DNA of 64,000 bases. It comes from Tubulanus polymorphus. Taxonomy: Eukaryota > Animalia > Nemertea. Numbering within the stretch: position 1 is the first letter of the stretch; each line of letters begins with the position of its first letter. Below are positions 1,296-46,200 of the stretch, piece by piece. The notes below the pieces were generated by a model. It saw nothing but the letters and a program-made list of their open reading frames with translations. It had not been told where the DNA came from and searched no databases. The stretch spans positions 11,792,962 to 11,856,961 of the forward strand of contig NC_134034.1 of NCBI RefSeq assembly GCF_964204645.1, read 5' to 3'. The translations under genes were made by a program, and so were the position numbers.

Positions 1296-4200
1296 CTAGA
1301 GGTGTTGATAAGACCGATTATGAGATAGTTTGTGAGCTTATTCTTTATGTCAAGTGCCGTTTAAACTTTGTTTTAACTATGAATTTTGTAATTTGATCGT
1401 ATTTTCCATTTTTGTGAATCAGGTCGATAAGATTTGTACGGAAGCCCCTAGGTGACATACGAGAAAGTTTTTTCACAATTTCTGGTGTTCATAATAAGTC
1501 GAATTTCGACATAATAAGTCGAATTTCGTGTTAATTAAGTCGAATTTTGACTTAATAAGTCGAAATTCGACATAACAAGTCGAATTTCGTGTTAATCAAG
1601 TCGAATTTCGAGTTAATTAAGTCGAATTTCGAGTTTTATTTTCATGTCGAATTTGGACTTATTAAGTCGAAATTCGACTTGATTAACACGAAATTCGACT
1701 TATTAAGTCGAAATTCGACTTAATTAACACGAAATTCGACTTATTAAGTCGAAATTCGACTTAATAAGTCGAAATTATGAAAAAAATTATCTCATATGTC
1801 ACCTAGGGGCTTCCGTAGATTTGAGCATGAATTCGGAAAAAGATTAATCGAACTAAATTAACCTGAAACAACCACTCAAATTAACAACCGAATTCATCTC
1901 GAAGTGGAGAATAAGGTTATGGCAAATTGGATTCAGATCCACTAAGTTGATTCCAGTTGACCGTGCCATCGAGACAAATTAGTAACGAACTGTGGAACCG
2001 GATCTTGGTTTTTATGGTAAAAGTTATAGAGCAATTCTAAACGCATATATATATATATATATCAATCGCTACAGTAATAAGCACTAATAATAAGCACTAG
2101 AAAGAGAAACGACATCTTTAATACTAGGACAATTCATTTCAGTCACAGATATCTATAAGCAAAAGATCCAGTTATATTTCTGAACCATTTAAACCACTGA
2201 AATCATTGAGACGATGCACGATAGATCATAAATCGCATTCGATTGACGTAACTTCTCCATCCACCCAAGAAACACGTATTGTACTCAGAGAATTAAACAT
2301 AGCCTTTCCAAGTCCGACATATTATCTATAGCAAGTGATTGGACAACTATATCATTTGAAATAGATTGATTATATAAATGAGACTCGGCGACCTAATCTG
2401 CCAGCGCTGGACGCGAAACGGATAATACAAAAATCTATATAACTTTTTACTGACGAAAGCGATAAGCAAGAAGCGGACATTACATTTGACTTACTAACAT
2501 AACAACAAATCTATTGATGAATTATATAGATGGTATTTGTCAACAACAAGCAGCCACCGCTGAGTCCGAAACGGATAATACACAAACGCATCTATCTGAC
2601 TTTGAACTGGCGAAAGCGACAATAATACCAAAGCGGACATTACATTTTTGACTTACTAACACAACTGGGTTCGGTAGTGTTTTGGCAATAAGTTCTACCG
2701 TTAAACTCAAAACCTTCAAAACCATTTGGGCATTTACAGAACCTGCAGAGCTCGTTATACGTGACGTCACCCAAGCATTTGCATCCGGTGCAAATGCAAA
2801 AAGTTTTACATTCTATACAAAATGAATATAACACAGGAAACTTTAACAATTGATGAAATGTACACGTCCCTGAGCGATGTCATTAAACGGTGCAGCAAAC
2901 AACTCACGTCCATAGGTAACTGTTGTAGAAGTTGTTGTAACTGCGAATTCGCTAACACCCCCTGTTAAATAATTTTGAAACAGATTACTCGCCTGATCTT
3001 GTAAACAGGTGTTTAGAGATTTGAATCATAATTTTGTAAAACCATAGCAGCTTTTGCGAAAACTAACAGTTTTGGAAGAGAACACATTGTTAATCACGCA
3101 GTGGCAAAGAGAAAATACATTATTCGAATATCAATGAATTGACAAGGTTGATGTAGAATTGCTGCTGAAGTGAAGTAAAAGATGTTAGATATTGTTTCGG
3201 GTACCAGAATCGGGAGATTTTTGCCTACCTACAGTAGTTGTTGTCCCTACAGTAGTTGTTGGTGCTGGTGTGGCCAAAGTAGTTGTTGTTCCTAGTGTCC
3301 CTATAACTGTTGTAGTTCCTGGTGTACTGGTGGTAGTACTAGGTTTTAGTGTTCCTACAGTTGTTGTTGGTGCGCGGGTACTTTCAGTAGGTTGAATACC
3401 GATGCATGCATTGATTACAACATCAGATATTATTGGTTGTGTTTTCTTGTTTCCAACGATCGAAATCCTTATGAATGGTTCGTTAACATCCGGTCCGAAA
3501 TGGTACACGATGCTTCCATTGAATTGTTTCCATTTGTGTTCCCTTTTGTACTTGCTTCCGTCTTTGCTAGTGAGCAGTTGAACTTTGGCCACCGATTGAG
3601 GTTTAAATGAAATCCATCTCAGTTGTACTTTTGTTGCAGATTTGATTTCGTAGGTGATATCCCCTTTTTTATTGTTTGTTGGTGGTGACCACAACCCCCC
3701 TACGCTTTTTAGTGACTTGTAGCCATCTTTTGGGTCATTTATTTGAAAATTAGTCGAGACAGAATCGAAAGTTGTTGGTATACAAAGCTCGGGGCTTGTC
3801 GTTATTTTAGTCGTCGTTTGCGTGGTTGTTGCAGCTGGTTTTGTCGGTTTCGTAGGAGTAGTATTCGTAGTTGATGGTGTAATCGTGGATGTTTCTATCA
3901 GGAAAACGAACAGAACATTATCTCAAAAGTAAATCTAGTTACACACACGTCTATTCTAGATCATCACAAATGAATAAAACAAAATGAGATATTGCAAAAG
4001 GAATCAAACATACGGTATGAATTAATCTTTTTTAAAAGGTTTATAAATGTCATATGCTATGTAGGTACAATATGAATACACATAATACAAATATCATTGA
4101 ATTAGTGATGCTACAATGTCTGTTTATCTACAGTGGAAAAGTGTATGATGTTGGGGATACTGTTATAATCAATCATCCAGGAGTGTTTGCATACCTAAAA

Positions 4201-7200
4201 TTGTAGTTGACCCTAACGTTCCTACAGTAGTCGTAGGTCCTGGAGCTCTTAGAGTAGTTGTACCTGGTGTTCCTATAGTAGTTGTACCTGGTGTTCCTAC
4301 ACTAGTTGTACCTGGTGTTCCTATAGTAGTTGTTGGTGCAGGTGTTCCTACAGTAGTTATACCTGGTGTTCCTACAGTAGTTGTACCTGGTGTTCCTACA
4401 ATTGTTGTTGTAGTCGTCGATTCTGTGAATTCAGGTGGAGTTTGTGGTGCCACAATAGGTGTAGTAGCTGTACCTGGTGTTCCTACAGTAGTTGTACCTG
4501 GTGTTCGTACAGTAGTTGTACCTGGTGTTCGTACAGTAGTTGTACCTGGTGTTCGTACAGTAGTTGTACCTGGTGTTCGTACAGTAGTTGTACCTGGTGT
4601 TCCTACAATTGTTGTTGTAGTCGTCGATTCTGTGAATTCAGGTGGAGTTTGTGGTGCCACAATAGGTGTTGTAGTAGTTGTACCTGGTGTTCCTACAGTA
4701 GTTATACCTGGTGTTCCTACAGTAGTTGTACCTGGTGTTCCTACAGTAGTTGTACCTGGTGTTCCTACAGTAGTTGTACCTGGTGTTCCTATAGTAGTTG
4801 TACCTGGTGTTCCTACAGTAGTTATACCTGGTGTTCCTACAGTAGTTATACCTGGTGTTCCTACAGTAGTTGTACCTGGTGTTCCTATAGTAGTTGTACC
4901 TGGTGTTCCTACACTAGTTGTACCTGGTGTTCCTATAGTAGTTGTTGGTGCAGGTGTTCCTACAGTAGTTGTACCTGGTGTTCCTACACTAGTTGTACCT
5001 GGTGTTCCTATAGTAGTTGTTGGTGCAGGTGTTCCTACAGTAGTTATACCTGGTGTTCCTACAGTAGTTGTACCTGATGTTGCTACAGTAGTTGTACCTG
5101 GTGTTCCTACAATTGTTGTTGTAGTCGTCGATTCTGTGAATTCAGGTGGAGTTTGTGGTGCCACACTAGGTGTTGTAGTAGTTGTACCTGGTGTTCCTAC
5201 AGTAGTTGTACCTGGTGTTCCTACAGTAGTTGTACCTGGTGTTCCTACAGTAGTTGTACCTGGTGTTCCTACAATTGTTGTTGTAGTCGTCGATTCTGTG
5301 AATTCAGGTGGAGTTTGTGGTGCCACACTAGGTGTTGTAGTAGTTGTACCTGGTGTTCCTACAGTAGTTATACCTGGTGTTCCTACAGTAGTTGTACCTG
5401 GTGTTCCTATAGTAGTTGTACTTGGTGATCCTACAGTAGTTGTACCTGGTGTTCCTACAATTGTTGTTGTAGTCGTTGATTCTGTGAATTCAGGTGGAGT
5501 TTGTGGTGCCACAATAGGTGTGGTAGTAGTTATACCTGGTGTTCCTACGGTAGTTGTACCTGGTGTTCCTACAGCAGTTGTACCTGGTGTTCCTACAGTA
5601 GTTGTACCTGGTGTTCCTACAGTAGTTGTACCTGGTGTTCCTACAGTAGTTGTACCTGGTGTTCCTACAGTAGTTGTACCTTGTGTTCCTACAATTGTTG
5701 TTGTAGTCGTCGATTCTGAGAATTCAGGTGGAGTTTGTGGTGCCACAATAGGTGTAGTAGCTGTACCTGGCGTTCCAACAGTAGTTGTACCTGGCGTTCC
5801 TATAGTAGTTGTGCCTGGTGTTCCTATAGTAGTTGTACCTGGTGTTCCTACAGTAGTTATACCTGGTGTTCCTACAGTAGTTGTACCTGGTGTTCCTACA
5901 GTAGTTATACCTGGTGTTCCTATAGTAGTTGTACCTGGTGTTCCTACAGTAGTTATACCTGGTGTTCCTACAGTAGTTGTACTTGGTGTTCCTACAGTAG
6001 TTGTACCTGGTGTTCCTACAATTGTTGTTGTAGTCGTCGATTCTGTGAATTCAGGTGGAGTTTGTGGTGCCACACTAGGTGTTGTAGTAGTTGTACCTGG
6101 TGTTCCTACAGTAGTTATACCTGGTGTTCCTATAGTAGTTGTACCTGGTGTTCCTACAGTAGTTGTACCTGGTGTTCCTACAATTGTTGTTGTAGTCGTC
6201 GATTCAGTGAATTCAGGTGGAGTTTGTGGTGCCACACTAGGTGTAGTAGTTGTACCTGGTGTTCCTACAGTAGTTGTACCTGGTGTTGCTACAGTAGTTG
6301 TACCTGGTGTTCCTACAGTAGTTGTACCTGGTGTTCCTACAATTGTTGTTGTAGTCGTCGATTCAGTGAATTCAGGTGGAGTTTGTGGTGCCACAATAGG
6401 TGTAGTAGCTGTACCTGGTGTTCCTACAGTAGTTATACCTGGTGTTCCTATAGTAGTTGTGCCTGGTGTTCCTACAGTAGTTGTACCTGGTGTTCCTATA
6501 GTAGTTGTACCCGGTGTTCCTACAGTAGTTGTACCTGGTGTTCCTACAGTAGTTGTACCTGGTGTTCCTATAGTAGTTGTACCCGGTGTTCCTACAGTAG
6601 TTGTACCTGGTGTTCCTACAGTAGTTGTACCTGGTGTTCCTACAATTGTTGTTGTAGTCGTCGATTCAGTGAATTCAGGTGGAGTTTGTGGTGCCACACT
6701 AGGTGTTGTAGTAGTTGTACCTGGTGTTCCTACAGTAGTTATACCTGGTGTTCCTACAGTAGTTGTACCTGGTGTTCGTACAGTAGTTGTACCTGGTGTT
6801 CCTACAGTAGTTGTACCTGGTGTTCCTACATTAGTTGTTGTAGTCGTCGATTCTGTGAATTCAGGTGGAGTTTGTGGTGCCACACTAGGTGTTGTAGTAG
6901 TTGTACCTGGTGTTCCTAAAGTAGTTGTTGATCCTTGGCTGCCTAGTTGGGTAGTAGTTGGTATTATTGATGTTCCTAAATTATATGCCAAATTTCTTGT
7001 TGCAGTTATATCGTGGGGTGACTATTTGTCATTGAAAGTCATATTTGGTCAAAAGCTCTTTGTGACAGAGGAAACATTGTCATGAAGACTTGAAATACTT
7101 TATAGCGAAAATAGTCAGATGATTATCTTGTAGCGTTACTTCTTAGGTCACCAAAAGCTTCACACTTTACACGAGTCACTGTTACTACATGTATGTTAAC

Positions 7201-10200
7201 TTTAACTGCCTCATTGCTATCGATATAAAAAATCTTCGGTTGCTTCAAAGGCAAAAACGCCTAATGTTTACCCACTGTTTTAGATGATTAGCTTAGCCCA
7301 AAGTGTACTAGCAATTCCACGCGTAAGCTGCGTTTATATTTTTACCATACGTATGATATACAGGGCGCATATGCACTATTACTTCAAGTGGCTACACTTT
7401 ATTTCAGATTTAAAGTATAAAATTTGATGTACTTACCAATCGTGGTTGGTGTTGTAACCGGTGTCGTTACTAAAATTGAATATAAGAAACTAAATGTCAG
7501 TACATCAAAAAGTTTGACTTCGATGAACGTCTTTATACATTTTATGGATGAATTTGCATCCTTTGTCAAAGCTGTGCATTTAAGTTATCATTGGAATAAT
7601 CCAATATGAGAGTTGTACATACTAATACAATAGTAAACATCATTACCGCGATGGCAATTCTGATTACCATCGTGCCAGGAATGAAGCAGGTATGTTGGTG
7701 GACCAGCTTCGCTAGTGTTTCACAAAGGTGCTAAGGAAAACGTTACGGTTTCCCAATTGCTTTGGCTTTTTCTGCGAGCATTGCACAGGATAGCGCAAGG
7801 ACTTACCTGATTTAGATGTGTCCGCTAAATGAGCAAAGATAAATTGTCTAAGAAGTCGCAGGGTTCGCATAAATAGCAATTCATTTTCGTTATCAATGAG
7901 AAAATAAGAATAATGAGACCATTACCTTTTATAAAGATCAGATTAAAGAGAGTCCAAATAGAAATCAAAATGACAACCAAATACCTGTAGGTTGGATGTC
8001 AACACATGCTTTTATTACGACATCGGATAACTTCGGTGATTTCTTACTAACTCCTACGAGCTTTATCTTTATAAATGGCGTGTTATTGTACGGCTTGAAT
8101 TTGTACTTGATCGTTCCTTTGCAGTTATTCCACACTTTTTCACGGTTGTACTTGCTTCCGTCTTCGCTAGTGTACAGAAAAACTTTACGCACGGAACTAG
8201 GTTTAAACCAAATCCGGTTCAGTTGAACATTTGTTGCAGATTTGATTTTGTAGATGATTTCTCCACTTTTCCCTCGTGGCGACCACGACCCTCTTTCTCC
8301 TTTCAGTGACTCGTAACCGTTATTCGGCTTACTAGTTATTTGCAAATCAGTCGTGCGTGAATTGAACTTTTTTTGTTTACAAGGTCGAGGACTGGTCGTT
8401 GTTCGAATTGTCGTTTTTGTGGTTGTTGCAGTTGGTTCTGTCGGCGTCGCGGGAGAAGTAGGCGTAGCTGCTGGTGACACCGTGGATGTTTCTATCGGGG
8501 CAACAAACAGAGCATTATGCACTGTATGTATCAGTTACGCATTTGTCTATTCTGGATAGCCGTTTTCATCTGATTATCGACGCGCGAACAAAATTATTCG
8601 AGCATCTATGTATGAAATGGCAATAATTCATCAATCCGATTTCTGCCGAACACGTTTTTTAATTGGTTACTCGACCTGAGCATCAAGTCATTAATAGGGG
8701 TCCGATGCCCATTCTCGAATTGGCAAAACAACATGGCCACCGTTTTGAGCTGGATTACGGCACTTATCATCAAATTGCCCACTTTCAATGTGCCAGACAG
8801 GAACATGAAATCCTTAGAGCGTTTGGAAAACCTATAGACGCCAGAATGATTTTGCTCGTCACGCCCGTTCATGCATGCAATATGTAAAAAAATAGTGGAG
8901 GTATCATGCAATATATAAATATATATATATAGTTTAGGTACAAAATAATTGATACAAAACGTTACTTTTGGTATCAATATTTGAATCATAGTATAAGTTA
9001 CGCTTAGTAGCGATTGCTGATCAGATAGGATATGAGTTATTTTTTCATGCAACATGCAACACCATCATCCTCGCCTCGAGAGAACAAATATTCTAATAAA
9101 TGACTTACCTTTGTGGCAAACCTCTAAGGTTACATCGGTAGCGGGACTGCCAGCATTTACTGCTATTTCAACGAGCGAAGCCTCGAAACGTTTTAAGATA
9201 TCTGCACTGCCGGATGGCAAATCAATTTTCTGAAAAATGACGGGAGCCCAGATTAGGCGAAACGTTTGAACTACAAATTTATTGCTGATTTGGCTGATTG
9301 TGACGCCTGCATCTGGCAGTTCTCTTCGGTCTAGTCATGATCCTACTATTCGCCCTAGTCAACATCATTTTTCACGAAATTATGGAAGCAGTGCTTTTAA
9401 AATCTTAGCTGCAGCAAATCTATGGAATTTTATTCGACGAAAAAAAAAACAGGTTAGGTTCGCCCTTTCACTCCTTTGAACGTTGTCTTAAAATGTACCT
9501 CTTTATAGAATAGCATTTGCAGTGTATATATCTTTTTGATATCTAATCAATATCTCATCATAATCAACGTATCTTAAAGATTTTTATTTTCTTGTTTACA
9601 TTTTGTGTAACGCACCGTGATCGATTTCAATTAGTGTAGGGCGATATACAAGAAATAAGAAGATAGATTATTATTATTATTATTTCTGGCATTACTCTGA
9701 ATTTCTGGTGATTTTTTTTACCTCAGTGAGCGTCAGTTGTTTCGGGCTCGAAGGTTGATCGTATTTGACCGTTATCGACGATACCGCCGACGAGTAGGTC
9801 GTAAACTTTTCGATGAAGACGAACTCGGCGAAGGTGATCACGATACTGGTTCCAGCCTTCAATACAGTGCCGGTCGAGTTGTATTTAGCCGGGCTAATTT
9901 GCGTCAGGGATGGCTTTGAAACGACGCTCGTTACAAGACCAGGGATTCCGTAGATAGCCTGCAAAGTTCCCTCCGTACAAACTAGAGAAAACACAATCTC
10001 AAAAATACATTTTTGGTTGAATTCGACAATCTTTCTATCTCTATATCGATAATGATAATAATGATGATAGAATGATGCAATTTTACAAACAAAAGTAGCC
10101 TTATAAAGGATGCAATTATAAGTATGATATTCTGGTTGAGATGGAAGGGAAATGTTCTCGAAGAAGCAAATATATCTTTTACCAACAAGGCCTTATCACC

Positions 10201-13200
10201 TAGATCGTTTGAATAACAATTATTTCTCTTCTTTCTTCTTTACTTCTTTCTTTTTGAGGGCCCTATTTCATATTAACTGTTTCTCAGTTACTACAGGCCC
10301 AGTCGAGTTTAGTTTACTGTATTTCGTATTTTGTATCAATGTATACATTACGATGTAGATGATATTTGAAAATGAAGGCATTCGATACCGATATCAAAAC
10401 AGAAAAGAAATTCAACTTCAAATTGGGAAGAAATCTTCTATTTTCAACTGATTTCCGAGTTGGGGTTAATAACGAGACGCGTATTAAACCTACCGTGTGT
10501 CGGTAGTGTTGTTCCTGGAACGGTTGTTGTCGGTGTTGGTGTACCGGGTGTCGTACGAGGTGATGACACAGACGAAGACGGTGAGATTACTGTTGTTGTG
10601 GCTGTAATGTAAGACATTAAATGAAAATCGAAACGTAGTTTTTCACGTCATTTCAACTTCCCTCGTTTGAGCGCCACGTTTATTAGCTGGCTTGATATTT
10701 GTTTTCTCGATTAAGAGGGAGGGGGGACAAAGAAGAAGTTCCTTTCGATTAGCGGCTTTTTATTCTCTAAATTTTTTTTCGTTTATAACCCAACCCACGT
10801 TGAAATTTCAATGAAAATTCCAAATTACCTTTTTCCGTATTCATTTATCATATTGTCAAAAGTCAGGCCAAATATATCGTACCGAATTCGAAATCTTTAA
10901 TCGAAACTTTGCCATCTGTTAGTCACTACGCCTGTCTGGTCACAACATTGACCAGACAAACGATCAAACTTGATTTGTCGCTAGAGCTTATTGGTCTCGT
11001 GGCTAGCGTGTTCCGCTTATATGCTGAAGGTTCCGAGTTCGAATCCTTTGAAGAGTTAGGACTGGGATTGGAAATATTTTTGTTTGGGTTGTTTTCGAAT
11101 ATTGCCGCGAAGATATTTTCTAGCAAAAAGGTCTGGTCTAAGAATTTTGCAATTTTGAGAATTTAGAATTTTCTAACTTACAGCAAATCTGTTGCAGGAC
11201 GCAGCGATTGTCAATAATCTTGTACTGATCTGGACATACGTAATTCGGACAACATTGCGGGTGGTTCTTGCAATGTGAGGTTGCATCAGCGTTACATGGA
11301 ACCAAACAGTTGCACGTAATGTTCTCAACACAGTCTGTAAAAAATATTTAAAATACGTTACTCATAAATTGCCCGCATCGTATCATGATTTATTATGGCG
11401 AACCGCTGGGATTCAAGATTTGATTCAATTTGTTTTTCTTCAATTTCACTATTCGTTCACGTTTGAGTCGGAAATCGGTCCTTGAAATTTAAGCCGCGAT
11501 CACACGGAGATGATTTGGCCCGGGCCAAATTGGCACGGATCAGGCGCTCTCGGGCCAAATTTGGCCCGTGCCTAATTAGAGAGCGCGCTCACACGCAAAC
11601 CATTCAAACGCAATCATTTGTCTGGTGCTAAAATTTGGCTCGGGCCTGGTCCGACGTTTTTGGTCGGGCCAAATTTGGCACCCGTGTGAATAGTTGTTCC
11701 GGGCCAAATTTGGCACGGGCCAAAAATGTTCGTGTGATCGCGGCTTTAGTATATATGGAAAGAACGGAAACTGAAAACTTACAAACGGGAGTCGTGGGCG
11801 GTCCTGATGGTGTAGCGAATGGTGTCGTCGGCGGGGGTATAGTTGTTGTTAGAACCTCTTCGCAGATGAACTGCGGGCCTGTTAAAGACAAAAATCCATA
11901 CATTTACTACATATGAAATACGCGGAACAAAATAATGGAATCGAATTAAATGAGGGGCTTCTCCCTTTTAGTATGATTAGTAAGCGTACTAGTCCACGGT
12001 TTGGTTATACTTACTTGGTTGTGTACCGTCAGTGCAGTTCTTTACCAAAATCTTACAGCATGGTTTTTCCGGATCTTGAGTTAGATATTCTCCCTAAAAT
12101 GACGAAAAACGTAGAGAGATCATTGGCATGAGAAGAACGCATAATAGCTAATCTGCTTCCACCGCCAACCGGTCGGTAAGGTACCGTTCCGAGGAGGAGG
12201 CGTTCTCTCTTTCCAGCCGGACGTCGGCGCAACCGCCAACAATCTAGAATGGTATCTGGAAACAAAGATATCGACGGCACTGAACAAGATCTAGACAAAC
12301 AGATAATCAGATATGATTACCTTTTCTGGATCTGGTGTTGGCAGCTGTGGACACGTGGATGCGTTGTTCTTCGTTATGATTTTACCGTCCTTGCAGAAGC
12401 GGTAGGTACATTCCGTCAACGAGTCGATGATCTTATTTGCTTCGTGAGTTGTGTTGGTTTCCGGATCGACACACTTACATTCAGTTCGGTGAATACAAGT
12501 CGTGCCATCGTATACTTTTCCACCATCGCATTCGCAGCATCTTCCGTCGGGAGAGGTTACGCAGTCTCCCGTTTCCAGGAGTCCCGGACACACGTGTTTT
12601 CTGCAACATTCTTTAGTCGGTATGTCGACCTTACGTTCGTTAGTGTCGCAGACTACAAATCAGAAAATAAGGGGATATGAATAGAATACAAAATCATTGT
12701 GACAAGAGAAATCGAAGTTTAAAAAGACACAATGTTTCGGATTCTATCAATATAGGTCATCGCACAATTTTGAGGAGGACTGCTTTCTACTACCACCAGG
12801 ATTCAAACACATGAATCCTGGATTGATGAGAGACCAGTGAAAGACTGACTGCCTGCTACCACCAGGATTCAATCACATGAAACCTGGATTGATGAGAGAC
12901 CAGTGAAAGACTGACTGACTGCTACCACCAGGATTCAATCACATGAAACCTGGATTGATGAGAGACCAGTGAAAGACTGACTGCCTGCTACCACCAGGAT
13001 TCAAACACATGAATCCTGGATTGATGAGAGACCAGTGAAAGACTGACTGACTGCTACCACCAGGATTCAATCACATGAAACCTGGATTGATGAGAGACCA
13101 GTGAAAGACTGACTGACTGCTACCACCAGGATTCAATCACATGAACCCCGGATTGATGAGGACTGAGCAGGAATAATTCTTTAAACTTACCGCATCGAGT

Positions 13201-34200: not shown

Positions 34201-37200
34201 TAACTGGTGGTGTTGTGCCTGGTGTACCACTAACAGTGGATAAACTTGAACTAGATTCAGTAGTTACTGATGGTACACTAGGTGAAGGTACAGATGTTAC
34301 TGTTGGTGTTGTGCCTGGTGTACCACTAACAGTGGATAAACTTAAACTAGATTCATATGTTACTGATGGTTCACTAGGAGATGTAGGAGATGTGACTGGC
34401 GGTGTTGAACGTGGTGGACCACTAACACTGGGTATGGTTGAACTGGTTTCAGTAGTTACTGATGGTTTACTAGGAGATGTAGTTACATATACAACTGACG
34501 GTGTTGTGACTAGTTTGCCACTAAGGGTTGTTGTAACTTGTGGCGTAGAAGGTGCCGTAGTGGTTGTTTGAGCTGCTGGAAAAAAATACATTAAAACAAA
34601 ATCATTATGGCATAAAAATATTCTTTATCTAGTCACGAGGAATGTAAATACACAATGTATGAAGTGAATTAATTAGGGAATGAATTCTACGATGTTTTGT
34701 TAAACCTACGGTCGTAAATTATATATTCAAATGGCAACCAGGGTGCCGAACTTTTTCTTCTTTATGAGATAACAGGTTTTAATTCATAGATATTACGGTA
34801 AAAACTTTGATATTCCATAAGTATGAAAAAGGTTTGGTTTAAAACTGGTTAAAGCTAAGTAGCTTACTTTTGTATAATTGTCGTTGCAGAGGGTGGAAGG
34901 TGTGTAGTTGTGTGAAGCTGTGTCATTGTGGAGGTCAAAGGGTGGGTTGGTGCGGGTTGGTTTAATCGCGAGGGTTGGTGGAGTACAGGATCGGTATTAC
35001 CAACTGGTGTCATCTTCTGATATTTCTTCTCCCAAATAACTGCTCTCGATATAGATAAAGCTCTTTGAACAAGCATCACAGCAGGATTTGCAGACAAAGT
35101 AAAACGAATTGTTGAAATATGAATGAATCAAACTGATACAAGATGAGAAAGTACATGACCACCAGAATCATCAAATATGAACTCAAAACTGAGGCAATAA
35201 GAACCGATGACATGCTGGTTTTAGTTGACAGGCATGCTTGAGTTTCGAATAGGTTCACGGCTGTTGGCATCTAGAGTGAAACGGGTAAACCCTCAAAAAA
35301 GTGGAAGGCTTTAAACAAAAAGTTCGTCATAGGAACGAACACAATAGGGAATAAGCCTCGCGATATTAGGTCTGTTAATAGGTTGGTAGAAAAACATCTC
35401 GGAAAAATCAAATAAGTAATTCATTTCATGGGCATTGGCAATAAAGCAGCATTTGAGAGGATTGGATCATTCGTGAATGAACAAAAACTGGAAACAAGAT
35501 GCAAAAACGGGTTGTTAGGAATTATAGGATTGGCATTCGTGTGTAAAACTTACGGGGCTCGATGCATGCCCAGATTTTAGCCGTCAGGTACACTTTCGTA
35601 GCCGATGGGTCAATCGTGTCTTTAGCAACTAACCGAAACTTGGGCCCATCAACGCCATCGCCTAGATCGATTTTGCCGCCGTTGTTTTCGGTCGAAACAG
35701 TTTTCGCGACTTTCCACTTATTTGTGGCTGTGTCGTAAACCTCGACGTCGATAGTTTTAATGTTTGTATCGACTTCTAGTTTGGTTAATTTCGGTATCGA
35801 CGCGCTATTGGCGGTAAGATCTAGTGTCAATGCGGCGGGCTTATCGCCGGTTTTGGGCTTCAAGATAACCCACTGGGTCGCGTTTCCTCGATTCAAAGCG
35901 CCCAGTACAGACGTTAGTGACTCGGGTGACCCATCGGCCGGCGTAGCTGACACCTGACTATCGGAAACTAATCCTGGCTTATCGTTTATAAGAACAGCTT
36001 CTTCCTTGCAAGTTTCTGTAAATCATAATACACGTAGAACGTCATATGTGTCGTTCATAATTCTTCAATCTCAATCATTAACGACATTAATGAATAGATT
36101 CGCAAAACTTTGCGATAAGTATTTGTCAATACCACTTTTAGAATTCTGTGAAATTCCGCCGATACTGAGGTGATATTTTACCGGATTCACGTTAACCAAA
36201 AAATCACAAGCAGTTATAACTCTGTGGCAACCAATATTTCCTGAATTCAACTCTTTCAGACTAGGAATGACCTATGAATCAGTAGAAACTTACTTTGTGG
36301 TGGAGTCGACACTGTAGTTGATGCTAAAATGGAAAATAGAAAGTAGATGTACTTGACATATAGAGATATACGATGATGGTTGAGTTTATAGATAAGCAAT
36401 GGGTGAGGCAACAATCACATATAGCATCTGCAACTTCCCCTTCATTTTAAAGCGACCTAAAATGCGTCTAAAAGCAGGATAAATGTTACATTAATATCAA
36501 CAAATGAACGCTGTAAGTAGTCACTGGAATTCTGCAAGGAGAAAAGACAAACATAGGATTAAAGCCTTTGTCCGACAGAGACAATTACTAGTACACACTA
36601 CTGCGATAAGTTGGGACGAACAATTATTGCAGAAGCGCTACAAATACTTTTGCTAACTCTAAAAGCTGTCCATGTACCTAGAAGCAAAGGCATATAATTT
36701 CTCCGGACAATTCCAGGTTACAACATAGCGACTGGAATCCCCGTATCCTGAATCCGTGTTCACTGCTCTAAATTTGATGCAAGACTTGTCTGTTCGCTAT
36801 CCAATCAAACATTATGTCACTGTAGCCTAGCCGGCGACTTCACAGTCTGGATTTCCCCGAACCAGAAATTTGGGGTTAAGCTCCGTGTGATTTTATTGAA
36901 ACCGTTAGCTATACCAGGTTTAAGGTGATACCATTGCATGCAAAATGGGTCTGCGAAACTGCACTAGATAGCGATAACATTTTTCTGTTCTAATCATTCC
37001 GCACTCACTTGGTTCAATGCATGCGAACACTTGGATTTTCACTTCATACGCATCGATGACGTTAATTGGATATTGTCTAAGATTCTTTGCGATAAGTCGG
37101 AACTTCGTCGCAGGCAGTGTTGGCCGAAACAGTAGCGAAGTACGTAAAGTGCCGATCGGCTTCCATTTGCCGACATTGTCGATAATTTCAACATCGAATG

Positions 37201-40200
37201 CTTCGATGCCTTTCGTACTGGCAGCAAGTGCGAAAAGTTGTGGAACTCCGGCTGCTTTTTTCGCCAAGTCGAATGTAAAAATTGGATCTTTGCCAGCTGT
37301 ATCATTTTGTGAGAATGTCAACATATTTTGTCCCCCTCGTCCGAGGATGCTATATGGTTTTGCCACGGACGGGTTTTCTGTCGTGATCTGATCGTTGCCG
37401 AATAGATCGGTTCTATCGTTGATTTGGACTACATTTTTTGAACTACAGGCTGAAATTCAAATATCGTAAAAAGCTGATGACAATGAAAGCTCATGTTGAA
37501 AAGGCACGTACAGATATATACACACGCAAGCATACGACGCGTGAACTAGATCTTACATCATTCTCTATCGAGAGATGGAGAGAAATGTGTATCTAGAGAT
37601 TGAAAGCGGTGATAGCATTTACATCCATTCCTTTAAAGAAGTCTTCGTTTAATGATATTATTGGCATGAAATAATTCATTATGTGTATATTGAAAAAGCT
37701 ACCCCAATCAGGAAGCGCGTCTAGAACTTTTTTTTCCAGTTCACTTACTCGGCGGTGTCGTTGTCGCCAGTGTGGACGGTCCTGGTGTTGTTGTGAGAAT
37801 TGTTGTAGTTGGAATTGTAGTTGGTTTTGAAGTAGCTGAAAAAACCGAACTATATTGGTAAAAGTTGTTTTCCTTCCTTTTGCGCGTGCTCATCATATAA
37901 GTCAAGAGCAATTTATGAAAACAGAGCGTTGATCATAGATTATATCATCATCTGCCTCGTTTAGCTGGAATGTTTGGAAATTATTTATTTACTGCTTTAT
38001 TGGACCTACACTCGATGATATTCTAGGTTCTGTTTATTGAACTCACCCGGTTCCATACAGACAGAAATCTGTACCGTTATGTGTATAATCGAGTTCTCGA
38101 GATCTATTGGAAGCTCAGTTGCGATCAACCGAAATTTCGTTGTCGCTACTGCTGGTTCAAACAGGGCTTCGTCATTTTTGATATTAGAATCTGGTACTTT
38201 GACCCATTCGCCGTTGTTTCCAACGACCTCTAATGCGAATTTCCTTATATTTGTGTCGACCATAATGTGAACAAGTTGTGGAACTCCGGTCGCTTTTTTC
38301 GCCAAGTCGAACGTGAAAATTGGACCTTTGCCAGATACACTTCGTTGTGGAAACGCCAACATTGTTTTTCCTCCTCGTCCGATGATGTTGTACGGTTCTG
38401 ACACAGACGGGTTTTCTGTCGTGACCTGATCGTTGCCGAATAAATCAGGCCGGGCGTTGATAACGATAGCGTCCGCTCGTTTGCAGGAGGGCTGAGCTGA
38501 AATTCATAACAACCGACGATATGTGTATGTGTGCTGCGTGTTATAGGGGCTAAAACTGTCTCTACAATCGTGTGCACAACTTAATGTCATAAACTGCACT
38601 TCGATTTAAACCAACAACTTCGGAATCAAAACATATATCAGACAAAATACAAAATTGGTTTCATCATTTCTATCCGAAAGTACATCTACGCCTGATTTCC
38701 AGTGCACTTACTAGGTGGCGCTGTTGTCACCGTTGTGGATGGTGCTGGGGTTGTGGCAACTATTGTCGTAGTTGGAATTGTAGTTGGTTTCGATGTAGCT
38801 GGAAAAAACCGAACTATATTGGAAGAAATTCCTTCCTTTTGTATTCATCAGATTGAAAGCATCGTCTGAACATCGTAATAGAACGATTTGTGAAAATGGG
38901 GTGGAGGTCATCAAAATGAAATCGTGGTCAAAAGCTTAGGTTGAACAGATTCTTTCACGAGAAGATTCGTAGAATAGCCGTGTTAACCGGGTGTAGAATA
39001 AATAATTAAACGAGTAGTATTATGTATTTGACGAACGAGCTTTCACTGCTAATGTATACATTAGCTTCATCGGTCGAATGAGTATAGTACATAGGCCTAC
39101 TACTCGTCTCGATATAGATTTTATCATGTGCCCAGTGTACTGAATTAGCATATTTCCTATCATGGACGCTTGTGAAAATATTCAACTGCTTTGATGACCT
39201 CCACCCGACGATATCCTAGGTTCTGTTTGATGAACTCACCAAGTTCCATACAGACAAAAACTTGTACCCCTATGTTTATAATTGGAGACTCTGGTAGCTT
39301 AGTTGCGATCAACCGAAATTTCGTTGTCGCTATTGCTGGTCCAGACAGGGCTTCATACTTCTTTATACTAAAATTTGGTACTTTGACCCATTCGCCGTTA
39401 TTTCCAACGACCTCTAATGCTAATTTCTGTATATTCGTGTAGACCTCAAGGTCCTCAAGTTGTGGCACTCCGGCCGCTTTTTTCGCCAAGTCGAAAGTAA
39501 AAATTGGATCTTTGCCGGATGTTTCGCTTCTTTGAAAGATCAACGACGCTACTCCTTCTCCTCGACCGATGATGTTGTACGGTTCTGACACAGACAGGTT
39601 TTCTGTCGTGACCTGATCGTTGCCGAACATAGCAGGCCAGTTGTTGATGCGGATAGCATTCGCTCGATTACAGGTGGGCTGAGCTGAAATTCATAATGGC
39701 CCACAATTGGTGTATGTACGATGGTGTGGAACAACTTAAGAATCAGTTGAAATCTGTCCACGTCATGGTCAGATGCAAAATTATAACGATTTGAAATTTC
39801 GATTGTAACCCACGAATTCGGAATTGATATTCAATTGGAACGGTTTAATAGTTTCAAACTCTCGAATTTTCACCGAAGATTCATTATTTTACACGCGATT
39901 TTTTCGTTCATTAAACGCGCATTTTCTGGCAAAAGTATCGAGCTCTTTCTCTATCAATCAGATCGGAGCCATTGGCATTGTTTCAAATATTGCTTAAACC
40001 AAGTGCCGAACGAAATACAGAACAAGTTTCAGATATTCATATCCGAAAGTATATCTTGGGAGAGTTTTCCTGGGCACTTACTAGGTGGCACTGTTGTCGC
40101 CGTTGTGGATGATGCTGGGGTTGTGGCAGCTATTGTTGTAGTTGATGGAGTAGTTGGTTTTATGGTTGCTGGAAAAAAATCGGAACATTTTCGTGCGAAT

Positions 40201-43200
40201 TCATCGATCAAAGAGATGATTTTGACGACTAAGAGTTAAATAAACAAGCAGTGAAGTAGATTGAATTGAAGTCGACTTCAATTGGAGGACTTCTTCATCG
40301 TGCAAACGTTCTCTCTGAAATTCAAAACATCTGACGAAAATCATCAAAATTGTCCTCAGAAAAAGTTGTTACAAAAAATTCAATCAGTCAACTGAAAATG
40401 AGTATACTAATAATGAAATTGGACCCGGTTCCAAAAGATGGTTGAAAATGCTTTTGAAATCGTATAAATCTTAACCAAATACAGTGAATTTAGATTCGTG
40501 AGCCCTAACGAAAAACCCCATCGGCAGTCTAAGCGTCAGATTAAACCAATTCTCACGGAACCAGATCCTGGGACTTTACTCGTTAACATTTATTGAAATG
40601 ACGAATAAAAAGTTTGTTTTTTATCATGGAAAATAATAAAAAATATAGCGCACACTCACTTGATGGTACAGGTGTCGTGGGTGTTGGTCCCGTAGTTGTA
40701 GGTGTTAGTGTTGATGAGCCTGAAATGTTGTTTTTGTTTATATACTAGAGGTATGTGTCGTCGTGTTTCAGTGGGTTTATATGTATATGAATGTGAAAAA
40801 CGAATTCGTGATTGCATTTTACGCGGCACGGTTGCTCTATAAGTTGAATTATGTTGACTTCGAGCACTGCTAGAAACCAATCTCGATCAGGTTTCTTTGC
40901 GAAGTACTCAGAGTTCGATTTTATTTATATACTTTCATAGAAAAAAGTTCTTTTTAAAGAAGTGTTAGGATGATCTGTAAATGAAGTATGCTTTCGGGCT
41001 CTGAAGGCTTTAACTGAGGACAGAGTCACCCGGATCCAGTTCCACAGTTGTGAGTTTGAGTTTACTCTCCAGATAGAATAAGTTCATCTTCGATGAATTA
41101 ACACTTAAAAAAACCTTTAAACTCAGTACCGTACCGTGAAACGGGTTCCAGACGATGACGTTAAGCTTGTTGTATGTTTAACTCAATTGGTTAACATAAA
41201 ATCCAATACTTACTCGGCGGTCGGCAGACACAACATCCAGTCGACGGCGAGATATCTTTCACAAGTCCCTGATTTAAGAAATATCGAGAAAACAGAGTTA
41301 AGATATCGTCGTAACGAATTCGAATGCCTTATATTAAAAATACATGTATTGTTGCTAATATGTAATCTGATTATATCAAAACTATAACAAAGCATCTTAT
41401 GATAGCAAAGCGCAAATCATCAGCTAAAATCAAATTAACGAATCGTCCTGTTGCTTGTAATTTCAACTATGTTTTGACGAGGCCGCGTTAATAACGTTGT
41501 AATATATGAGTCAGTTGCATAAGTCATGGCTTAGGTTAAGCTCATCTTGGTTTTGACAAGCAGCGCAACACCAGTCTATGGCCATCTCAGTTCAGCCAGG
41601 GAAGTGTGACTTCCCCGGTTCAGCTAACAATCATTTCACGTCGGTTTTATTAACAGCGAAAGACATTTCCCTATTCCGTAAGTCATATGTCGTATGTCAT
41701 ATGCTGTTGAATGTACTTACGGGGCTACACTGTTCTGTATTGCAGTCTTTACCGCACGTTACTGATCCGTTTATACATGTACATTCGATGCATTTCGTTT
41801 TGTTCCAAACATCACCGTCCTATCAATAGAAAACACGAACACATATATTCATATATTACTGAAGATGGATATTATAAATAATAATCAAAACGTTGATCGA
41901 ATGTTAAGCCCAATGAAATTCGGATTTCTTTTTTACTTTGCTTTGTGTAGGATTCAATGTTATTCAATGACAAGACCATATCCAAAACAATATTTGAACA
42001 ACTGGTCGATTTGCTCATGAATTGCTACGACGTTCTAGGTGCCTGTTGGAGTAATCATTTGGGAGCAATCAAATGATTACAATGATTTACTCAAATGATT
42101 ACTCCACGGTTTGACGTCTAGAGCTGATGACATTACTCTCGTAGATGAAATCTTGTTCATACTTACAGCACGTTCAACTGGCGGTTTACCAGGTACGGTA
42201 GACTGTTCCAAGCAAGGGCAATTCCGTTCATCCGACCCGTCCGCGCAGTCGATTTTCTTGTTACATTTATCAACCTTTTTAAAGCACTGTTTACAATCAT
42301 CGCACCGCATGTACGTGCTGTCTGCGCACTCGACGCAAGGCGAGGTTGTTGGCGAGCTCGGTGGGACTACTGGAGTTGTCGCAGTTGAAGCTGGACTACT
42401 GACGGGAGTGGTTGTGTGCGGCACTGTAGTGGTTATCGGGGGCGTAGTCGGAACTAGAACAAAAAGCCAAATACATCGTTATATGTTATATCATCTTTAT
42501 GTATTACCAGGGCGATAATATTGCGGAAAATGTATGTACAACGCGTTGAAAGGTGACAAAATCCTAAATTTCCAAATGACCGAGGAAAGATTATGTAAGA
42601 TTTCTACATATCTAGTTACATAGATGTACATAAAAAATGTATTCTACACGGTTTATTTTTCTCGAATATTTCTTAATTGTAATCATTCCAATAATCTAAT
42701 CATTGCGGATGAATAAAGAACATATTTTGAACTGAATTCGAATGAATTATCAACATAAATATAAGACATCCGGATAGAGAGACCTCAACTATATCATATT
42801 CAACTTACGTTTCTTGCAGTGACAACAGTCATTTGGATTATTCACCAATGTTGTCTAAAACAAAACAAAAAAAAACAATTTCAATCAGTGATATTATACA
42901 CTGATTACAAAGGTTCGAGGAAGGCCTAATCTTTTCTTGGCCCAGACGACAACAGATACTATACTAACCCCTGTTCTACAAGTAATTGAACAGATTATCG
43001 TGCATTTGAGCGTGCACCCTAGATCGTACGTGCATGTTTCGTCACAGGTCACTGTGCCATTATATTTCCTCGTGAACGGCTTGCCGATCTACGAAACAAT
43101 ATCATGCGTATCATTTATTACATCGTATCATTATTAACCATTATTAGAACAACAGCAATAACAATAACAATAACAATAACAATAACAATAACAATAACAA

Positions 43201-46200
43201 TAACAATAACAATAACAATAATAATAATAATAATGATGATAATAAAATGCTAGTGAAATTTACATCAAACATTTGCAGTTGTCAAGAAGCACCAAATCTT
43301 TTTTTCAATATCAGCATCATGATACATAGATCAATATAGAAAACCATCTTGAAAATAAGGTCCAAAAATTGCAAATTGAGATGATTCAAAATTCAAAGGT
43401 TTTCACGAGAACGAACATGATTCTTACCGGGTACGTATCGTTGCCTTGTCCACATACACAATCGGTATGGTTGACACATTTTCCTTGGTCATCGACGACC
43501 ATATCAGTGGGACACATGCAGCATTTACCTGCACGAAAAAATAAAACAATATTCCTATGGCAATTGGATATTTCTGGAGATTATTAAACGAAAATAGAAA
43601 TAATCTCATCGCGACCTCGGTATAGCTGCACTGAAATATTACTGACTTATATCGGCCGAATAATCGTAGATAAGAAAATGTCCCTACTGATGTTATTACT
43701 TCACCGCCTATAAACATCTTGAAGTATTTCGTAAAAATTAACTAATCAATAAATTACATTTTATCTACCGAAATATTTCTCTCATTAGTATGTTCGTAGT
43801 TACTCTTGTTATTTCTATTTTTTATCTAAATCAGTTATATCGTAGTATATCGCGTTTTTGAATTTGTAATTTTTCTACTGTGTTGTTATGAATATAAATG
43901 TAAATTGTGTGTTGTCCGGGTTTCAGTGTAAATGAAACAAATAAAACTTAAAAGACGTCGACTTCCGACGTACCGAATTTATCGGGAGTCTTATCCGTGC
44001 ACACGGTCGATGCTTGTCGATTATTCAGGACGTCCTGACACGTTCGTTCGCAACCGCAGCTTTCATACTGTTTACCATCGGTACACGGTGGAGTGGTCGG
44101 TGGTATCGTTGTCGGTTGAGGCGAAGTTGTAGGCACGGTTTTCGGGGATGTCGTCGGTATCGGGGAGGAGCATTCGTTGATATCGATGCACTCGAGGACT
44201 TCGATCTTTATGTTCGCCAGGTATTGGTTATTCGGATCCTTAGCTAGGTAAATCGTTAATTTCTTCGCTGATACAGGTTCGTTGACCAGTGTATTACTCG
44301 GTGTGAAAACCTACGTAAGACAATTTCATAATCGTTATTATCATTATTATTGACATTTTGGCGTCCTATTTAGTGTTATGCACTGCTCACGGGTTCTTAC
44401 GTCATCTAGAAAGTACATTTAGCAATCATGCAGGTAGCTGGAGTAAACTTTGTCAATTTAGAATACGGGTACATGTAATATGAAATTTGAAAATCTTCAA
44501 ATCTAGAAACCACATGGTGAAATAGCCCGTACACTCGTCCAAGGAGAAAAAAGATTATAATCGATATCTATTTATCGAGAATGAATAAAATCAAAAAGAC
44601 AAGACGAACTCCCCACTTTTCGTGTAGAAACGATTGTCGAACATTTTTTGGGAATAAACGCTACCTGTTTATTTCCGTTAATGTCTTTTACTGGTGCCAT
44701 TGTATTTCTGGCCATCATCGAGTTGGAATATTCTGCGGTCCATTCGTACCCGTTTATGACTTTGATATTGTGAATAACAAGAGGCCGTTCCCCGATTCCG
44801 GCTAGAGTCAGTTCGATGTGTGGGTTCGAACTGAGTCCGTAATTCAACGTCCAACCTTTACCGTCCGTCTTAACGATATCTCCCGATCTGCTGAGCGCGC
44901 CGCCATTTATGAACAGCCGGATCTTCGAAGCGGCGATATCCTTCATGACGTTAGTGCACACCGATTTAATGCAACCTATGAAAAAACGCGACACAGATTC
45001 GTGTTAGTTCGCAATGAGACATCTAATACAGGGCAGGCACGGATCCAGAGGGGGGTTTCAGGGGTCGTGACCCCCTGCTCAGCTACCAAAAAAATTTCTT
45101 AATCGTTTTTTTGAAGGAATATACTCAAGACAAAGCGGCCGAACAGTACTATATAATCGGTACCATATCATTTTATGTTTGGCCATACAATATCCCGTTA
45201 AGGGTCCCTATCAGAGATTTTAGTCGGTGGTTTGACATTAACTTTCATTAACACCCTCCTGGAAAAAATCTTGGATCCGCACCTGCAGGGGCTGCAGTTG
45301 TCCGAAAGAAAACCAACGGATAAATACCATAGCAACAATGAACATTTAACTATCGCTATGTCAACTATCCACTACTCAACTCGATCCAACTTTTGAGCAA
45401 CTGACCCCAGCACGTGTATCGATCGAGTCGGTTTAACGAAAATAAAGTGTAGTTCAAGTAGAACTAGTGGAGACTGATGGCTGACAATGGCCATTACGCG
45501 ATACAGCCGAAACGTTGTTGAAATAACATATCCATTTACGGAAGAACTTTCTTTTTCCGGACTTATTACTTTAATGTAGGATTGTTGACAACAAAGACAA
45601 GTTCCCCTATGTAAGATGCTAGAACATCGAGTAGTGGACCGATGTCGGACTCGTCATCAATACTTTCAGTGTAAGATGATTTGAAGAATATTGTATGTGC
45701 GTATATATTACCGGGTGATGTAGTTGAAGAGATTGGTCCGGAAGCTGTAGTGATCGGGGGTGGTACTGTCGATGCGCACGACGGGCAACACTCTCCTTCT
45801 ACGTGGACGGCCGACAATCCCTGAAAATGATGACGTAATTTCTTTTTCCAAACACAGCAAAAAGTAAATGAAATCAGTTCGGGTGAATTAAATTCAAAAA
45901 CGAGCGATTCATGAATGTGTCGGAAATACAGTAAACCTGGCCTTTCTCTGACATGGCCAACTGAGACCTTTGTCAAAATCATTTTTCTGATTAACATATT
46001 TTCGTATCGTTTACGCGTACTAGTTCACAGTAAGGCGAAGTTTACTCTAAATCGAACCTCAAACCGATGTTGTTTACTTACCGCTTTTTCGCAGAGAAGT
46101 TGCGCACATTGAACGCCGCACGATATCGTCCCGTTTAGACATGTACACGTTTTGCAGCCTTTCTTCCAAGTTTCGCCAGGCTATGCAAAAAAATATTAAT

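Follow-up and report, generated by a model that had tools for sequence, protein, structure and literature searches.

Discoidin-fold beads beneath the Pfam detection limit in a putative giant gel-forming mucin locus of the ribbon worm Tubulanus polymorphus

The 64,000-nt stretch of the Tubulanus polymorphus genome analysed here (the window; NC_134034.1, referred to as C10, C10:11792962-11856961; assembly size 268 Mb) probably represents the 5′ two-thirds of a gene for a giant secreted gel-forming mucin, in which long Pro/Thr/Ser-rich (PTS) stretches alternate with small globular domains ('beads') of discoidin fold that would make contacts within the secreted material. The beads form one fast-evolving superfamily with the discoidin, or galactose-binding-like, β-sandwich fold, lying beneath the detection limit of Pfam, and have been multiplied in blocks: a nine-copy cassette of three exons, pairs and triplets. 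All relevant coding sequence of the window is on the minus strand; positions below are those of the window unless C10 or a flanking segment (L) is given.

Bead families and their splice structure

The 20 units listed in an initial annotation of this DNA are all present (1 + 3 + 4 + 9 + 1 + 2, here families A to F), and Cys-bounded domains of 125–150 aa alternate with PTS stretches where it had placed them. Its division into about six families is borne out by an identity matrix, which gives 31–96% identity within and 10–32% between families; B and C are mutually closest (49–70% within B, 16–32% for B versus C).

Family A is represented by one two-exon, Cys-bounded unit immediately after the third VWD unit (43974-44975; canonical phase 1 sites serve as acceptor, at 44975, and as donor, at 43974) and has no Pfam match. 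Family B comprises three single-exon beads (39241-39678, 38048-38491 and 37010-37453, within 37010-39683; phase 1 donors at 39240, 38047 and 37009) that align with family C. The fourth copy of the latter (C4; 35555-36016), also a single-exon bead, was aligned with B and has a weak Pfam match to F5_F8_type_C_2 (E=0.074), while the other three C beads, delimited by their Cys positions, lie within a giant exon (30629-31039, 28895-29305 and 26324-26749; 137–142 aa from Cys to Cys). Repeat period, translations and splice sites define family D as nine tandem three-exon cassettes (18213-25802), each with a bead of ~141 aa from Cys to Cys; the period of the array is ~897 bp and copies are mostly 95–100% identical. 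Each cassette consists of a PTS exon (phase 1-1), an exon for the N-terminal half of the bead (KRCTK...TTWKNRK; 1-0) and one for the C-terminal half (VTTPTD...VKACYEKQ; 0-1). Family E is a two-exon, Cys-bounded unit of ~127 aa (9109-9981; exons 9981-9722 and 9229-9109) with canonical splice sites and phases 1-0/0-1. In family F, copy F1 has PTS sequence and a bead in one exon (7986-8491; bead at 7995-8387) and copy F2, 53% identical to F1, has PTS, bead and PTS in one exon (3230-3894; bead at 3395-3790).

The unit ends proposed in the initial annotation at 44975, 43974, 37009, 35554, 9981, 9109, 7985, 3894 and 3229 fall exactly at canonical AG/GT sites. Every module is phase 1-1 overall, so that copies can be gained or lost with the reading frame preserved. 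A hidden Markov model (HMM) of the beads found no match better than E=6 on the plus strand (134 kb), indicating that the bead pattern is not due to chance.

A 1.48-kb module including F2 (2521-3999) has a 98.1% identical copy in L003, 32,161 bases to the left; it comprises the F bead exon plus a short exon rich in Cys (2643-2879; 79 codons, 12 of them for Cys) that has no match in Pfam. Duplication of a large segment of the locus was ruled out, as outside PTS repeats this module is the only duplicated sequence in the first 20 kb of the window.

Kinship of the families

Two alignments were used, A1 for families B and C, and A4, which has 22 rows: 19 beads of this genome, from the window and its left flank, and three rows cut from two database proteins, with no D sequence included. 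In A1, B and C align end to end, and the Cys, Trp and K.R columns do not vary. A4 is likewise coherent, and its common features are an N-terminal Cys, G-W, a P-x-I-x-I-D-L strand, an I-D-G-N-V turn, F-x-P, a K-I-R-L-V-P strand and a final V-x-A-C. The C-terminal Cys column is invariant in 22/22 rows, and the N-terminal Cys is found in all 19 genome rows and in one of the three database rows, whose cuts may begin past it. The beads thus have Cys near both ends, as do animal discoidin domains, and the Cys pair is also carried by families D, A and E, which were compared exon by exon.

An HMM built from A4 identifies all nine exons for the N-terminal half of the D bead (independent E-values 1.9e-5 to 4.5e-4; HMM positions 14–97), and the C-terminal half aligns to profile positions 114–143. 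Membership in one superfamily is confirmed for 18 of the 20 units (three B, four C, nine D and two F). Discoidin kinship of family A is only suggestive: hhalign places it in correct register with the bead profile (E=0.05) and, over 48 colinear columns, with exons for the N-terminal half of canonical FA58C domains of the same genome (E=0.03). Family E has no support from the bead HMM, and hhalign of its exons against the bead profile is colinear but not significant; it resembles D in its size, in carrying a Cys pair and in its two-exon arrangement with phases 1-0/0-1. Protein-atlas look-ups of the first exons of A and E gave no usable match.

Ratios of non-synonymous to synonymous substitution (dN/dS) between paralogous beads are 0.11–0.82 and all frames are intact, indicating that coding constraint is present. 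These ratios also mark fast evolution, which explains why the FA58C motifs have faded.

Predicted structures

Structures were predicted for one bead of family C (C1; 30623-31045, minus strand), using AlphaFold2 with A4 as the alignment, and for F1 (7995-8387, minus strand). The C1 model is all-β, with a predicted local distance difference test (pLDDT) score of 90.5 and a predicted template modelling (pTM) score of 0.86, and all five models have pLDDT of at least 88.6. In a Foldseek search of the PDB the top 50 matches to C1 all belong to the discoidin superfamily (probability 1.00; TM score 0.59–0.71) and include the DDR2 DS domain, the C2 domains of factors V and VIII, neuropilin b1, CASPR2, lactadherin C2, discoidin II and CBM32. 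VIA-align, an exhaustive scan of 48,161 chains that is independent of Foldseek, ranks DDR2, DDR1, CASPR2, factor V C2 and neuropilin b1 at the top (Z 13.2–13.4; 127–131 of 141 residues aligned), followed by CBM32 (Z 12.6) and IFT25 (Z 12.3), which are within one Z unit of the discoidins and so effectively tied with them. The best of these alignments, to the DDR2 DS domain, covers 131/141 residues (Z 13.4; root-mean-square deviation 3.1 Å), placing model residues 4–141 on chain residues 29–188, and these ranges would be compatible with a disulfide between the terminal Cys residues. In the ESM Atlas, all ten neighbours listed for C1 carry PF00754.

The F1 model is also confident (pLDDT 84.8, pTM 0.83), with CBM32, IFT25, factor VIII C2 and neuropilin b1 as top Foldseek matches. 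The discoidin-like jelly-roll postulated in the initial annotation, with AlphaFold and Foldseek as the proposed check, is therefore matched over the whole domain by both the C and F models, as a galactose-binding-like β-sandwich. Homology to the modelled families supports the same fold for B and D. As judged from the models, the beads belong to the galactose-binding-like superfamily by fold and lie outside PF00754 by the Pfam criterion.

Detection in sequence databases

The expectation that these domains would be too divergent for Pfam proved correct, as none of the 22 aligned beads and no single bead exon scores above the cut-off. PF00754 is the only Pfam family matching more than two beads (3/22, best E=0.004), and a PF00754 scan of the T. 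polymorphus genome gave 119 exon matches, none of them in the bead locus. A profile search of PDB sequences yielded chance-level matches only (a phage tube protein, Kelch).

The B/C profile gave 11 matches among 1.84 billion representative proteins. Most of these were taken as spurious, being short Kelch or cadherin-repeat stretches; the accepted relatives are proteins P0005 (encoded on a metagenome scaffold) and P0011 and one bacterial FA58C stretch. The last of these lies in a bacterial protein of 2,903 aa (E=1e-7 against the whole library), at residues 1771–1858, which Pfam assigns to F5_F8_type_C. Searches for homologous proteins with the bead region of the giant exon and with A4 were blank, which is weak evidence given their length limits. 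The description of the beads as lineage-specific agrees with the very small number of relatives among these 1.84 billion proteins, but this library may under-represent spliced animal genes.

Extent of the locus

The bead string does not end at 3229 but runs past the left edge of the window. The 70 kb of left flank examined (L001–L007; C10:11722962-11792961) has the same bead-and-PTS architecture over ~64 kb, with ~15 further beads: four copies of a CNEPIENIADF...FAACVESK type, four of a CKEPVKDVISNK...FAACVGK type, another copy of F (the third), four full-length beads that each occur once and two exons that probably encode N-terminal halves. TIL exons are found 44–46 kb left of the window and a cystine-knot-like exon 63 kb left (sub-threshold in Pfam; DAN E=0.0019, Cys_knot E=0.082). 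An intron ~23 kb left of the window contains a reverse-transcriptase fragment. If the whole is one gene, it would span ~125 kb and carry ~35 beads, and its product would have a length of very roughly 20,000 residues, a figure obtained by summing open exon segments and not from a gene model. The earlier size estimate of >10,000 aa is accordingly plausible, and probably too low if the locus is a single gene.

Coverage in available sequencing runs was also considered. Runs X2 and X3 show patches of depth over some predicted exons (7900-13400), but these were rejected as exon evidence because contigs of both runs start or end at GATC sites, which identifies the runs as Hi-C DNA; patchy Hi-C coverage in these runs can pass for exon coverage. 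Run X1 covers introns continuously and is therefore genomic.

Layout of the window

The polymerisation region lies at the N-terminal end (46711-58569), where Pfam matches on single exons identify three VWD domains and accompanying C8 and TIL modules, distributed across many exons. PF00094 matches from the own-genome scan (49461-49628, 50131-50385, 54145-54360, 54864-55004, 57507-57665 and 58342-58518) agree with these and place the VWD domains at 49.4–58.5 kb. The gene context is that of a VWD-C8-TIL gel-forming mucin, which supports the mucin call of the initial annotation. No further PF00094 match was found downstream in the 120 kb scanned (C10:11,722,962-11,842,000). Upstream of the VWD region is an EGF-like exon (60202-60552; Pfam EGF_PEAR1L E=1.3e-11), near which (60202-61704) is a further exon with a CCEGWTG motif and an EMI-like appearance. 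These exons may encode the N-terminus of the mucin or belong to a separate gene.

Between families A and B, a PTS stretch is accompanied by a Cys module with weak similarity to LDL-receptor class A (42080-42478; Pfam Ldl_recept_a E=0.0058, under the cut-off). The giant exon (26312-34575; open frame 26294-34624, 2,777 codons) is the largest, and carries 33-aa PTS repeats, seen as 99-nt tandem repeats, around its three C beads. A PTS exon of ~950 codons with 8-aa repeats of TTVGTPG type (4172-7021) is an open frame with 24/48/72-nt tandem repeats, and another PTS exon (1-1317) crosses the left window edge, its open frame extending 2,678 bases into the flank. The long Pro/Thr/Ser-rich tandem repeats of a gel-forming mucin are thus present, in addition to the three N-terminal VWD-C8-TIL units.

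Midway along the locus is a block of Cys-rich exons, recognised from translations and followed by more PTS sequence (12294-17771). One of these exons (13123-13365) has a weak Pfam match to VWC (E=0.0027) and the remainder have none. In each of the three runs, contig word depth reaches thousands over the intronic stretches 11396-11763 and 12684-13235, which are therefore high-copy interspersed repeats; a 66-bp tandem array (12790-13160) lies inside one of these stretches.

Relationship to other discoidin and mucin proteins

In insect hemolectin, three VWD units precede the F5_F8_type_C domains and a further two come after them, F5_F8 is a domain characteristic of lophotrochozoan mucin-like proteins, and in several protostome groups CysD is inserted near F5_F8 domains (Lang et al. 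2016, PMC4948705). CysD domains of vertebrate MUC2 form non-covalent dimers, for which a role in determining gel pore size has been proposed (PMC3195396). The background on which the initial annotation drew is thus found in the literature, both for FA58C domains of hemolectin and of mucins in lophotrochozoans (PMC4948705) and for CysD of vertebrate mucins (PMC3195396). The T. polymorphus locus resembles hemolectin/hemocytin and lophotrochozoan VWD mucins in having three N-terminal VWD-C8-TIL units and, after these, discoidin-fold domains and PTS sequence. However, its beads fail PF00754, number ~20 in the window and ~35 in the locus and belong to at least six subfamilies, and, in contrast to the 3+2 layout of hemolectin, no VWD units follow the beads in the PF00094 scan and the locus has no CysD. 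All seven genome matches to CysD (PF13330) are in another gene, at C10:10.66-10.67 Mb, in keeping with the initial annotation, which saw the beads as standing in place of CysD. That gene (C10:10662481-10688129, minus strand) combines VWD and FA58C exons with these seven matches, agreeing with the classical lophotrochozoan layout (PMC4948705).

The beads are like CysD (Mucin2_WxxW) of vertebrate MUC2 and MUC5, a proposed non-covalent cross-link (PMC3195396), in being small, non-PTS globules interspersed in a mucin region and, putatively, in being stabilised by disulfides. The two are unrelated in sequence and fold: CysD has the WxxW motif and ten Cys, as against only two Cys in the discoidin-fold beads. 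With animal discoidins (DDR1/2 DS, factor V/VIII C1-C2, neuropilin b1/b2, CASPR2, lactadherin) and bacterial CBM32 the beads share the same β-sandwich over the whole domain, but identity is only 12–20% and there is no match at Pfam level. Among secreted structural proteins of invertebrates, sea star Sfp1 has discoidin together with VWD, C8 and EGF modules, whereas sea urchin nectin has six discoidins, and the domains are assigned cohesive or sugar-binding roles (PMC7037938). The product of the locus would be another such secreted structural protein, although the domains of Sfp1 and nectin are canonical FA58C, few in number, and do not alternate with long PTS repeats. The literature found on ribbon-worm mucus concerns toxins and not structural mucins.

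A further VWD gene 350 kb away (L009/L010, C10:11437001-11452000, plus strand; the gene spans C10:11.42-11.45 Mb) has FA58C domains that Pfam recognises, separated by PTS exons rich in Ser/Thr/Gly, and every FA58C is split between a ~105-aa exon and a ~48-aa exon. This canonical two-exon FA58C string is likely the ancestral form of the bead arrangement. The two-exon split of families D, A and E resembles that of the neighbouring gene and fits descent from such domains, without proving it.

Discussion

In the proposed model, the three N-terminal VWD-C8-TIL units would be the multimerising end of the protein, followed by long O-glycosylation (PTS) repeats, and the string would continue for ~64 kb beyond the window to the cystine-knot-like exon, giving ~35 beads if there is one transcript. 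Beads would form unglycosylated, disulfide-clamped knots between stiff glycan brushes; through reversible non-covalent contacts with one another or with glycans, they would determine how cohesive the secreted mucus or tube material is and how wide its pores are. A cross-linker or lectin role is conjectural, and the contacts just described are favoured from the position of the beads within a protein whose ends would polymerise covalently. Reversible contacts are favoured by analogy, as the equivalently placed CysD of MUC2 forms non-covalent dimers and the discoidins of Sfp1 and nectin are cohesive or sugar-binding.

Several observations weigh against this model. Profile-profile comparison of the beads with canonical FA58C exons of the same genome is colinear and in structurally equivalent register, but not significant (E 0.19–0.24), and families A and E are without a sequence link to the other beads by hhalign of their exons against the bead profile. 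Besides the Cys pair, few columns are kept across families (one Trp, one Pro and hydrophobic strand positions), and they provide no pointer to a shared sugar site. A dN/dS of up to 0.8 represents weak constraint on the beads. A search for sequencing runs gave no RNA that would support expression or a single transcript, and the VWC-like Cys-rich exons at 12.3–17.8 kb resemble the C-terminal region of a mucin and could mark a gene boundary.

Other functions for the beads are compatible with part of the evidence. Like the discoidins of marine adhesive proteins, they might chiefly face outwards and bind foreign targets such as microbes, the surfaces of prey, substrate, collagen or lipid, instead of forming cross-links internal to the gel. 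The fold is common to CBM32, neuropilin b1, DDR and factor V/VIII C2 binders, discoidin occurs together with VWD in Sfp1, the six discoidins of nectin are said to bind galactose/GlcNAc (PMC7037938), and many divergent subfamilies would suit many specificities; nine near-identical D copies (~99%), however, are more easily reconciled with a bulk property of the material than with recognition of diverse targets, and this alternative seems rather unlikely. Still less probable is that the beads are passive spacers, or aids to folding or secretion without specific binding, derived from FA58C domains decaying under relaxed selection. Most paralog pairs do have dN/dS of 0.4–0.8 and FA58C motifs have been lost below Pfam thresholds, but all 18 confirmed beads retain both Cys and an intact frame, two families yield confident compact models and two paralog pairs have dN/dS of 0.11 and 0.33. 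A stronger version of the cross-linking model, that the beads are a distinct, lineage-restricted family of the galactose-binding-like superfamily that took over the role of CysD, with ~35 copies in about a dozen subfamilies within a single phase 1-1 mucin of ~125 kb and ~20,000 residues, can be put forward only tentatively and appears doubtful as a whole.

The locus might also comprise two or more adjacent genes on the same strand, a VWD mucin ending at ~12–18 kb and then one or more secreted bead-and-PTS proteins lacking VWD. The VWC-like and other Cys-rich exons in mid-locus and the TIL exons 44–46 kb to the left of the window are as expected from such an arrangement, and the run search gave no RNA linking the exons. 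Against this, inspection by eye identified no cystine knot among the Cys-rich exons of the window, the sole cystine-knot-like exon being that 63 kb to the left, and there is no VWD start in 120 kb downstream; coding sequence is also confined to a single strand with gaps of less than ~4 kb, and the shared 1-1 phase extends to all modules. Division into several genes is thus considered unlikely, although no search was made for an internal signal-peptide exon, and one giant gel-forming mucin gene with contact-making beads is retained as the probable interpretation.

The general arrangement is already on record in related animals, and what is seen here is a divergent, heavily amplified version of it. 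Discoidins in invertebrate VWD mucins have so far been recorded only where they are visible to Pfam, and surveys of mucins based on domain matches can overlook dozens of globular domains that are revealed only by fold prediction. Since dozens of such Pfam-invisible domains are found in this locus, supposedly unstructured regions of mucins may be far more structured than annotated. The A4 alignment could seed a family model for annotation of related animals. If the beads did take over the role of CysD in a single mucin, this protein would be among the largest gel-forming mucins described, with bead number and type tuning the material. If they cross-link the gel, they would be a source of small two-Cys domains for hydrogel engineering and, for the animal, amplification of frame-neutral cassettes in blocks would provide a simple genetic means of tuning the mechanics of its mucus or tube.

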